A stretch of DNA of 64,000 bases from Macrostomum lignano (taxonomy: Eukaryota), in NCBI GenBank assembly GCA_002269645.1, contig NIVC01002014.1, positions 149,148 to 213,147 on the forward strand. The letters are read 5' to 3'. Below, one piece after another: positions 17,785 to 20,700 of this stretch. Made by a program: the position numbers and the translations under genes. The notes under the pieces are model-generated. The model was not told the origin of the DNA. It saw only the letters and a list, made by a program, of their open reading frames with translations, and did no database searches. Numbering within the stretch: the first letter of the stretch is position 1; every line of letters begins with the position of its first letter.

Positions 17785-20700
17785 TTAATTAGCTGTATTC
17801 GACTCCCCGTTGCCGCGGCCGAACCGCTGGAGGCTGCGGGCCACGAACTCGATGGGGTCCGGCGGCCGGGACTCGACTGCGGCCAGCAGCGCCAGGCTGA
17901 GGGCTCGGCCTGCGTGATGGGGGCGACTGCATTCCATGTACATGCGGGTAGCTGAGACTTAGGAGTCTTAAACTGGGTGCACCTAGTAGACTAGTAGAGT
18001 GGCACCTGTGCTAGACTAGTAGAGTGGCACCTGTGCTAGACTAGTAGAGTGGCACCTGTGCTAGACTAGTAGAGTGGCACCTGTGCTAGACTAGTAGAGT
18101 GGCACCTGTGATAGACTAGTAGTGGCACCTGTGATAGACTAGTAGTGGCACCTGTGATAGACTAGTAGAGTGGCACCTGTGATAGACTAGTAGTGGCACC
18201 TGTGATAGACTAGTAGTGGCACCTGTGATAGACTAGAAGAGTGGCACCTGTGCTAGACTAGTAGAGTGGCACCTGTGATAGACTAGAAGAGTGGCACCTG
18301 TGCTAGACTAGTAGAGTGGCACCTGTGATAGACTAGTAGTGGCACCTGTGCTAGACTAGAAGAGTGGCACCTGTGCTAGACTAGTGGCACCTGTGATAGA
18401 CTAGAAGAGTGGCACCTGTGCTAGACTAGAGTGGCACCTAGCTGTGCTAGAATAGAGTGGCACCTGTGCTATACTAGAGTGGCACCTGTGTTGGACTGAA
18501 GTGGCACCTGTGAGACTGGGATGGCACCTGTGAGACTAGAGTGGCACCTGTTGGAGTGGCACTTGTGATACAAAGGTCAGAAGAAAAAGTTCATTATACA
18601 GTGCAGAACTTACGCAAGCCTCTAAAATAGTCGGACCGCAGCTGCTCAGAGACGGAGCGGTTGAGCTGGAACCGGAAGGACACGGAAGCAGATTGGATTG
18701 AGAGGCTTCTGCGGTTTGCAGAGCCCGCGCTTCTGCGTGGGTGGCTGCTCTGTGGGCGAACCCTGCTGGGGTGGCCTTCTGGCTGCCTCAGCTTCACCTC
18801 CAGGTCACTTGAGGCAAGCTCATCCCGCTGTTTCTCACGCTGTTCCTCACGCTGTTCCTCACGCTGTTCCTTACGCTGTTCCTCACGCTGTTCCTTACGC
18901 TGTTCCTCACGCTGTTTCTCACGCTGTTCCTCAGACTGTTCCTCAGGCTGTTCCTCAGGCTGTTCCTCATGCTGTTCCTCACGCTGTTCCTCATGCTGTT
19001 CCTCACGCTGTTCCTCATGCTGTTCCTCACGCTGTTCCTCATGCTGTTCCTCACGCTGTTTTTCACGCTGTTCCTCAGGCTGTTCCTCATGCTGTTCCTC
19101 ACGCTGTTTCTCACGCTGTTCCTCAGGCTGTTTCTCACGCTGTTCCTCAGGCTGTTCCTCATGCTGTTCCTCACGCTGTTCCTCATGCTTTTCCTCACGC
19201 TGTTCCTCAGGCTGTTCCTCAGGCTGTTCCTCATGCTGTTCCTCAGGCTGTTCCTCATGCTGTTCCTCAGGCTGTTCCTCAGGCTGTTCCTCATGCTGTT
19301 CCTCACGCTGTTCCTCACGCTGTTTCTCACGCTGTTCCTCACGCTGTTCCTCATGCTGTTCCTCACGCTGTTCCTCATGCTGTTCCTCACGCTGTTCCTC
19401 ATGCTGTTCCTCACGCTGTTCCTCATGCTGTTCCTCACGCTGTTTTTCACGCTGTTCCACATGCTGTTCCTCACGCTGCTCCCACAGCAGCTCGAACAGG
19501 TGCACGGGCTGCCGCTCCCAGGGCAGCAGGGCCAGCAGGCGATCCCGGCGGGGCAGCAGGAGGCCGAGGGGCTCCGACTCGTACTTGTAGTTGAGCAGGC
19601 GGGACCCGTCCGACATGCTGTAGGCCTGCGGTGCGAGGGTGGCGGTGCGAGCTGCTGACTTGATTGATTGGTTGATTGATTGATTTGCTTGTTGGTTAAT
19701 TAATTGATTGACTGATTAATTTTGATTGATTGATTGATTGGTTGATTGATTGATTGGTTGATTGATTGATTGGTTGATTGATTGATTGATTGATTGGTTG
19801 ATTGATTGATTGATTGATTGATTGATTGATTGATTGATTGGTTGATTGGTTGATTGATTGGTTGATTGATTGATTGATTGATTGATTGATTGATTGATTG
19901 ATTGATTTGTTGATTGATTGATTGATTGATTGGTTGATTGATTGATTGGTTGATTGATTGATTGATTGATTGGTTGATTGATTGATTGATTGATTGATTG
20001 ATTGATTGATTGATTGATTGGTTGATTGATTGGTTGATTGATTGATTGATTGATTGATTGATTGATTGATTGATTGATTGATTGATTGATTGGTTGATTG
20101 GTTGATTGATTGGTTGATTGGTTGATTGATTGGTTGATTGATTGATTGATTGATTGATTGATTGATTGATTGATTGATTGGTTGATTGATTGATTGATTG
20201 ATTGGTTGATTGATTGATTGGTTGATTGATTGATTGATTGATTGGTTGATTGATTGATTGATTGATTGATTGATTGATTGATTGGTTGATTGGTTGATTG
20301 ATTGGTTGATTGATTGATTGATTGATTGATTGATTGATTGATTGATTGATTGATTGATTGGTTGATTGGTTGATTGATTGACTGATTGATTGATTGATAG
20401 ACTAGTAGTGGCACCTGTGATAGACTAGTAGAGTGGCACCTGTGATAGACTAGTAGTGGCACCTGTGATAGACTAGTAGTGGCACCTGTGATAGACTAGA
20501 AGAGTGGCACCTGTGCTAGACTAGTAGAGTGGCACCTGTGATAGACTAGAAGAGTGGCACCTGTGCTAGACTAGTAGAGTGGCACCTGTGATAGACTAGT
20601 AGTGGCACCTGTGCTAGACTAGAAGAGTGGCACCTGTGCTAGACTAGTGGCACCTGTGATAGACTAGAAGAGTGGCACCTGTGCTAGACTAGAGTGGCAC

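Follow-up and report, generated by a model that had tools for sequence, protein, structure and literature searches.

A NWD1-like NACHT gene of the flatworm Macrostomum lignano with a candidate Dpy-30-type dimerisation/docking tail

Proteins of the STAND/NLR class normally oligomerise only once a sensor domain has been triggered, and in NWD1 proteins the chain normally continues with WD40 propellers. The Dpy-30 and RIIa modules, known from DPY30, AK7, NME5, RSP2 and DYDC1/2, form homodimers in which four helices pack as an X-type bundle, and the amphipathic helix of a scaffold, for example ASH2L, RSP3 or an AKAP-like protein, docks in its groove. The position of the module varies between families, being C-terminal in AK7 and NME5 and N-terminal (RIIa) in the regulatory subunits of protein kinase A (PKA), while DPY30 itself, at ~100 amino acids, comprises little beyond this dimerisation/docking (D/D) domain. 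Here, we describe a gene from a 64,000-nucleotide stretch of the Macrostomum lignano genome (contig NIVC01002014.1, positions 149,148 to 213,147 of the forward strand; hereafter the window, with positions counted from its first letter) that may bring these two kinds of protein together. With moderate confidence, we read it as encoding a NWD1-family STAND NTPase of ~2,200 residues that ends, via its last exon, in a Dpy-30-type D/D module.

The gene lies on the minus strand, where the model runs from 34648 to 17785 and consists of 13 exons over ~17 kb, encoding 2,239 amino acids with an open frame throughout; its introns comprise 12 of the GT-AG and one of the GC-AG type. The order of domains would be a DUF4062-like N-terminus, the NACHT switch, an NWD1-type helical region, ~850 diverged residues, an acidic spacer, a Ser/Arg-rich stretch and finally the Dpy-30 D/D module, the helix-loop-helix of which would be contributed mostly by the last exon. 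This terminal coding exon (17785..17909) is 125 nt long, has a phase-1 acceptor and holds 41 codons including the junction codon, the stop TAA lying at 17787-17785. Its product is (R)RALSLALLAAVESRPPDPIEFVARSLQRFGRGNGESNTAN, followed by the stop, and the putative D/D core (17818..17909) consists of a helix (RALSLALLAAVES), a loop (RPPD) and a second helix (PIEFVARSLQRFG).

The penultimate exon, termed exon K, ends at 18614 with GGC TTG C, in phase 1, and is followed by GTAAGT; the last intron (17910..18613, GTAAGT...CACGCAG) closes with ...CCCCCATCACGCAG, its AG at 17911-17910, and the terminal exon begins GC CGA GCC at 17909. Joined in this way, the two exons give ...EQLRSDYFRGLRRALSLALLAAVESRPPDPIEFVARSLQRFGRGNGESNTAN and a stop. 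A splice-compatible last exon with this peptide had been proposed in a sequence-only reading of the same DNA, and donor, acceptor and phase, read on the minus strand, bear it out, the peptide being exactly as claimed. The exon was also rightly said to be absent from the list of open reading frames (ORFs), as it had gone uncalled and is recovered by joining 18614 to 17909. The donor GTAAG and the acceptor CAG conform to the cis-splice motifs of M. lignano (PMC8629364). When the 80 AG sites of the interval were scored with an approximate weight matrix derived from the 11 other acceptors of the gene, 17909 came top at 8.8 bits, and it fits the (C/G)CAG|G type usual for this gene; donor and acceptor also agree in phase, for which the chance expectation is 1 in 3. 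The composition of the exon is that of coding sequence in the proposed frame: GC content at the first, second and third codon positions (GC1/GC2/GC3) is 0.71/0.55/0.83, the same pattern as in the other 12 exons, the GC3 of which is 0.77-0.91 if the repeat exon is excepted. With a GC content of 0.70, the exon as a whole is a GC island; past its stop, the next 200 nt drop to 0.40.

From the similarity of the peptide to known modules, we conclude that the terminal exon encodes a Dpy-30-type D/D core. To score it, a hidden Markov model (HMM) was built from 120 proteins labelled PF05186 (our own model, not that of Pfam) and compared with 3,128 decoys, namely 1,128 ORFs from all six frames of the window and 2,000 shuffled sequences. 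The terminal exon reaches 16.7-17.1 bits (per-sequence E = 2e-7), with the best decoy at 5.6 bits. Human DPY30, itself validated as a query at 205 bits against PDB chain 9yl3_P, provides a yardstick here, giving RSP2 and DYDC2, both of them accepted members, no more than 14-18 bits. The profile aligns the core ALLAAVESRPPDPIEFVARSLQ, in which RPPDPIEF equals the family consensus at 8/8 positions, so that the signature loop-plus-helix RPxxP(I/V)xF is present in ESRPPDPIEFVARSL. A single-sequence phmmer search of the PDB with the tail returned nearly exclusively Dpy-30-family chains (DPY30, RSP2, DYDC2), all of them weak at E = 0.3-1. Against 1.84 billion representative proteins, the tail alone gave three matches at E <= 0.001, two of them spurious; the best of the three, P0115, has E = 3e-5.

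P0115 is an unannotated protein of 393 amino acids with four tandem Dpy-30-like motifs (RTPDPIQF, RPDDPLQF, RPCDPVQL and RPHDPIQF), several D/D-like units in one chain being unusual.

An independent profile was made from the tail and the four P0115 motifs, with no annotated Dpy-30 protein included. Searched against the PDB, it matched 15 chains at E <= 1, every one of them from the Dpy-30 family, with E-values of 1.1e-4 for DPY30, 6e-3 for Chlamydomonas DPY30 and 9e-3 for DYDC2; AK7 was matched as well. Structure prediction points the same way. AlphaFold run with the family alignment gives a helix at 2-33, a loop and a helix at 38-51, with a predicted local distance difference test score (pLDDT) of 79, and the single-sequence run gives a helix at 4-46, the loop SRPPD and a helix at 52-65, with pLDDT ~92 across the exon junction, where the helix is continuous. 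In a Foldseek search of the PDB, ranks 1-25 are all Dpy-30 docking domains (probability up to 0.97, root mean square deviation (rmsd) 0.8-2.4 A), and PKA RIIa chains appear at ranks 35-36. A scan of the N-terminus and the tail against NCBIfam, a prokaryote-centred library, gave no match. With the PF05186-derived HMM, Foldseek and the tail-plus-P0115 profile in agreement, the Dpy-30 nature first ascribed to the last exon by eye is upheld. A chance resemblance, in which an Ala/Leu-rich, GC-driven peptide merely looks like Dpy-30 and the exon is non-coding, would suit the very short domain and the modest single-sequence E-values; set against it are the 11-bit gap over the best of the decoys, PDB matches drawn essentially from this one family, and the 8/8 motif together with the coding GC3 pattern, and we find it hardly credible.

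By sequence similarity, the first ~1,000 residues of the protein belong to the NWD1 family, with DUF4062 and NACHT. Over 93-95% of their length, the first 961 amino acids share 31% identity with frog and Saccoglossus NWD1, rising to 43-44% between residues 48 and 205, which align with the N-termini of these two proteins. Many of the retrieved homologues are labelled DUF4062 (PF13271) and NACHT (PF05729), a profile of 14 NWD-like homologues aligns residues 63-1008 with 541 bits, and exon 5 retains an intact Walker A (GRSGSGKS) and Walker B (ALLLDAAD). Exons 1-7 (34648-34417, 34188-34100, 33960-33844, 33503-33307, 32230-31045, 30698-30321 and 30024-29728) run from the DUF4062-like N-terminus (TVRVFISSTFSD...) through the NACHT NTPase to the NWD1-specific helical region, the last part of which takes up ~175 residues at the start of exon 8. 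A fragment from another M. lignano record also matches the NACHT part.

The other ~850 residues of exons 8-11 (26664-25804, 25327-23665, 23317-22995 and 22681-22442) are rich in Ala, Gly, Leu and Pro, have no recognisable fold and stand at the position of the WD40 repeats of NWD1. The region is evidently translated, because it is open, GC3-rich coding sequence. A WD40 propeller was sought here by BLASTP, PDB phmmer, the NWD profile and an HMM of the WD40 repeat, trained on the homologues that had been retrieved, with negative results throughout: BLASTP similarity to NWD1 ends near residue 895, phmmer with residues 941-1870 found no match in the PDB, and residues ~1010-1860 show no PDB or NWD1 similarity. 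With the WD40-repeat HMM, Saccoglossus NWD1 reaches 356 bits over 15 repeats and frog NWD1 158 bits over 10, compared with -6.4 bits for the flatworm protein. The NWD profile has one sub-threshold, blade-like match (residues 1789-1851). A degenerate propeller is conceivable. Of the architecture put forward in the sequence-only reading, the DUF4062 and NACHT domains hold good, as does the long linker, for which the gene model has a long acidic spacer, while the 'propeller sensor' is unproven, canonical WD40 repeats being undetectable by this HMM.

The spacer is encoded by exon K, which has a good phase-0 acceptor and starts with blade-like repeats carrying on from exon J. In copy K1 of this exon (18614..19625, phase 0 in and phase 1 out), the blade-like start reads AYSMSDGSRLLNYKYESEPLG...; a 12-nt repeat (18826-19482) makes the acidic (EEQR/EEQH)n segment, and the exon also encodes a Ser/Arg-rich segment and, as EQLRSDYFRGL, the beginning of helix 1. 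The acidic (EEQR)n spacer is variable in copy number and ~180-230 residues long. The Ser/Arg-rich stretch before the Dpy-30 helix (PRRSAGSANRRSLSIQSASVSFRFQLNRSVS; 18650-18800, minus strand; residues ~2150-2190) carries several basophilic-kinase-like sites. Among protein records, the only relative recovered by a 242-residue C-terminal query was the M. lignano UniRef entry A0A1I8IVH0, a truncated and partly frame-shifted model with ~97% identity in its unshifted stretch (3 differences in 97 residues, compared by eye); its penultimate exon begins at the same J-K acceptor, and the model ends inside the acidic repeat.

Exon K, together with its flanking (TCAA)n and a 25-nt minisatellite, occurs twice in tandem at ~2.26 kb per unit (18594-22445, minus strand), a duplication that the sequence-only reading had passed over. 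The second copy, K2 (20877..21744), has the same acceptor and donor as K1 and fewer acidic repeats (21089-21601), the number of these 12-nt, EEQR-coding units being the main difference between the copies. Outside this repeat, they are identical over 169/170 and 330/330 nt, the latter being the 3' end, and their intron starts are identical too. Splicing K2 to K1 produces a frameshift and a stop at 19474; therefore, either one copy alone is used, giving a protein of 2,239 or 2,191 amino acids, or the duplication is an artefact of assembly. The duplication may be very recent or such an artefact. The link from exon K to the last exon is unaffected, because both copies bear the same donor.

Several observations weigh against a Dpy-30-tailed protein. 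The domain is so small that Foldseek E-values are ~0.6. In the alignment to the DPY30 profile, which spans model positions 38-59, only the loop, helix 2 and the latter half of helix 1 take part, the upstream EQLRSDYFRGLRR being predicted helical and contributing no score. Spliced and unspliced versions score equally with the DPY30 profile, so sequence similarity alone falls short of proving the junction. Continuity of the domain across the junction, considered as a proof of splicing, was accordingly dropped given these like scores, with only the AlphaFold helix supporting it. The position of the intron, tested as a sign of exon shuffling, is not shared with octopus DPY30, where the intron lies elsewhere, and so nothing suggests that the exon was simply captured from DPY30 itself.

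Other difficulties concern the joining of the exon itself. Exon K may also terminate by read-through: the unspliced frame continues for six codons past the donor to KFCTV and a stop, where the ORF ends at 18594, and the equivalent end of the duplicated copy lies at 20857, so that both in-frame stops named in the sequence-only reading do exist as read-through ends. The last intron consists mostly of the 25-nt minisatellite (17987-18551), each unit of which carries a weak CACAG|G pseudo-acceptor; there are ~24 such sites, the best of which, at 18507, scores 8.5 bits against the 8.8 of 17909. In the collections searched, no transcript, expressed sequence tag or annotated protein carries this particular tail, which is also missing from a set of 5.8 billion proteins. 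These three points favour an arrangement in which the exon is coding-like and is rarely or never joined to exon K, the protein ending at KFCTV through intron retention or early polyadenylation, or in a short tail reached through a minisatellite pseudo-acceptor, which would make the Dpy-30 exon an alternative 3' exon or an unused piece captured not long ago. The donor GTAAGT is perfect, however, the intact frame, exact RPPDPIEF and coding GC3 argue for selection on translation in frame, and that frame is reachable solely from a phase-1 donor. We regard an unjoined exon as a credible but doubtful alternative.

The near-identical tandem duplicate of exon K also makes the local assembly suspect. 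Repeats such as the 25-nt minisatellite, (TCAA)n and the 12-nt coding repeat could have caused a mis-join or a false duplication, the Dpy-30 exon perhaps belonging elsewhere, and M. lignano is described as a repeat-rich hidden polyploid (PMC10468722). Yet both copies of exon K run into the same intron start and minisatellite, the Dpy-30 exon follows directly, and no other coding sequence lies between it and the convergent triose-phosphate isomerase (TPI) gene. A false duplication would, moreover, leave the connection of exon K to the last exon unchanged. Misassembly as the source of the tail is in our view very improbable.

The exon might instead belong to a separate small gene, either a 52-residue micro-protein starting at an upstream ATG (MYMECSRPHHAGRALS...) or a product of ~375 residues made from exon K and the last exon under an internal promoter, starting at MSDGSR. 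In-frame ATGs are indeed available at the start of exon K and at ~17946, 11 codons 5' of the acceptor (MYMECSRPHHAG...), the exon alone encodes a helix-loop-helix core of RIIa size, and M. lignano is rich in operons and trans-spliced genes, the trans-spliced leader ending in ATG (PMC8629364). On the other side, a stop lies 8 codons 5' of the MYMEC start, and the stretch after this ATG, SRPHHAG up to the acceptor, has neither helical nor Dpy-30 character. Exon K, for its part, opens at a good phase-0 acceptor and carries on from exon J, and the other M. lignano model joins J to K. A stand-alone Dpy-30 gene made by trans-splicing is ruled out, as the leader ATG joined at 17909 misframes the peptide. 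Because the leader gives this wrong frame and the terminal exon has no internal Met in the Dpy-30 frame, that frame requires a phase-1 cis donor, such as the one that exon K supplies. Taken together, a separate gene seems improbable to us, and we return to the terminal exon as the end of the NWD1-like gene.

In a protein so built, two tails would associate into an X-type four-helix bundle, as in DPY30, RSP2, NDK5, DYDC1/2 and AK7, tying two NTPase chains together at their C-termini. The groove of the bundle could dock the amphipathic helix of a scaffold protein, and the long acidic spacer would leave the DUF4062-NACHT part free to move and switch. We infer use of the junction in mRNA, dimerisation or docking by the tail, and the location of the protein in the cell, and the constitutive dimerisation, AKAP-like anchoring and ciliary role suggested in the sequence-only reading are of the same kind; a ciliary location is a guess by analogy with the prevalence of Dpy-30 domains in axonemes. 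The fullest version of this scheme, which we put forward tentatively and think rather unlikely, is a STAND/NLR NTPase whose PKA-RII/Dpy-30-type docking domain keeps it in a lasting pair or fastens it to an AKAP-like scaffold, perhaps by way of an amphipathic helix of axonemal or COMPASS type, and that arose in macrostomids as the ancestral WD40 sensor decayed. If true, such a means of positioning or pre-dimerising a NACHT switch is one that we met in none of the homologues retrieved or papers searched, and a C-terminal D/D module behind a spacer would mean a different control of the location and stoichiometry of the NACHT switch, and the gene would be a clear case of exon-level domain accretion where a WD40 sensor became unrecognisable. 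NWD1 is poorly understood, and a variant with a protein-protein handle could point to its partners, the case being one of a single genome and a predicted splice.

The surroundings of the gene hold several further features. The two-exon TPI gene (15580-16756, plus strand; exon 1 from 15580 to ~16148, exon 2 with its stop at 16756) faces the NWD1-like gene in convergent orientation, with ~1 kb between the two stop codons. Antisense within the 29727-26665 intron, the ORF 27561-28004 (plus strand) encodes a WSC domain matching the WSC region of Kremen-1 (E = 1e-8), and the ORF 28613-28912 (plus strand) is Cys-rich and possibly PAN/apple-like, the two pointing to a gene nested here on the other strand. 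Intronic micro- and minisatellites (30640-31044, 26665-27111, 19660-20398, 21779-22427 and others) are open in several frames, giving LTHE, SFISASSQLHL and INQS repeats, and stretch mechanically called ORFs far past the true exon ends, an example being ORF 30637-32253. Some 5 kb upstream of the NWD1-like gene, on the same strand, lies an intronless ORF of 608 amino acids (39623-41449, minus strand), AT-richer than its neighbours, with a caspase-like IIVDACRGG motif and no sequence match in the PDB at E <= 0.01. Three more likely genes or domains were identified by eye, namely an FAD amine-oxidase-like gene (VAIVGAGLSGLSAA) at 45674-49211 (plus strand), a fibrinogen-related domain ORF (GGWWFNSCA...NPNGLYY) at 57325-57864 (plus strand) and a G-protein-coupled-receptor-like gene at 58857-60194 (minus strand).

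Set beside known systems, the proposed combination appears to be rare, in keeping with the sequence-only reading, which did not recognise the architecture. The motif RPx[DNE]Pxx[FWY] occurs in none of the 113 retrieved DUF4062/NACHT homologues, our literature search found nothing joining NWD1 or NACHT with Dpy-30, and it found no relevant work on Macrostomum NACHT proteins. With NWD1 of vertebrates and Saccoglossus, the flatworm protein has in common the DUF4062-like N-terminus, the NACHT domain with its Walker A and B motifs and the NWD1-specific region that follows. In contrast to NWD1, it then has no detectable WD40 repeats, and in their place come ~850 unrecognisable residues, the acidic spacer and the Dpy-30-type tail. 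It is plausible that a STAND protein of the NWD1 family lost its recognisable WD40 repeats and gained the spacer and tail.

The tail itself resembles DPY30/Sdc1, the COMPASS subunit and founding Dpy-30 D/D protein (PF05186), with a loop and helix 2 near-identical to the consensus and a modelled helix-loop-helix that superposes at 0.8 A over 31 residues. Differences remain upstream, where the conserved first helix of DPY30, YLDQTVVPILLQGL (YLDQTVVP-type), is not recognisable in the upstream exon of the flatworm gene, and in the intron, which interrupts octopus DPY30 at KE|RPP and lies 14 residues further upstream in the flatworm. The RIIa D/D of PKA RII-alpha shares the building block of the X-type bundle, as the RIIa chains among the Foldseek matches reflect, although the sequence profiles of the flatworm tail match Dpy-30 members only. 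In layout, the flatworm model resembles the axonemal proteins AK7, NME5/NDK5 (RSP23), RSP2 and DYDC1/DYDC2, all of which carry the D/D module at one end of the chain, several of them being larger and multi-domain; chains of this group are among the matches of the tail or its profile. The partner domain in the flatworm would be a STAND NTPase rather than a nucleotide kinase or a spoke protein.

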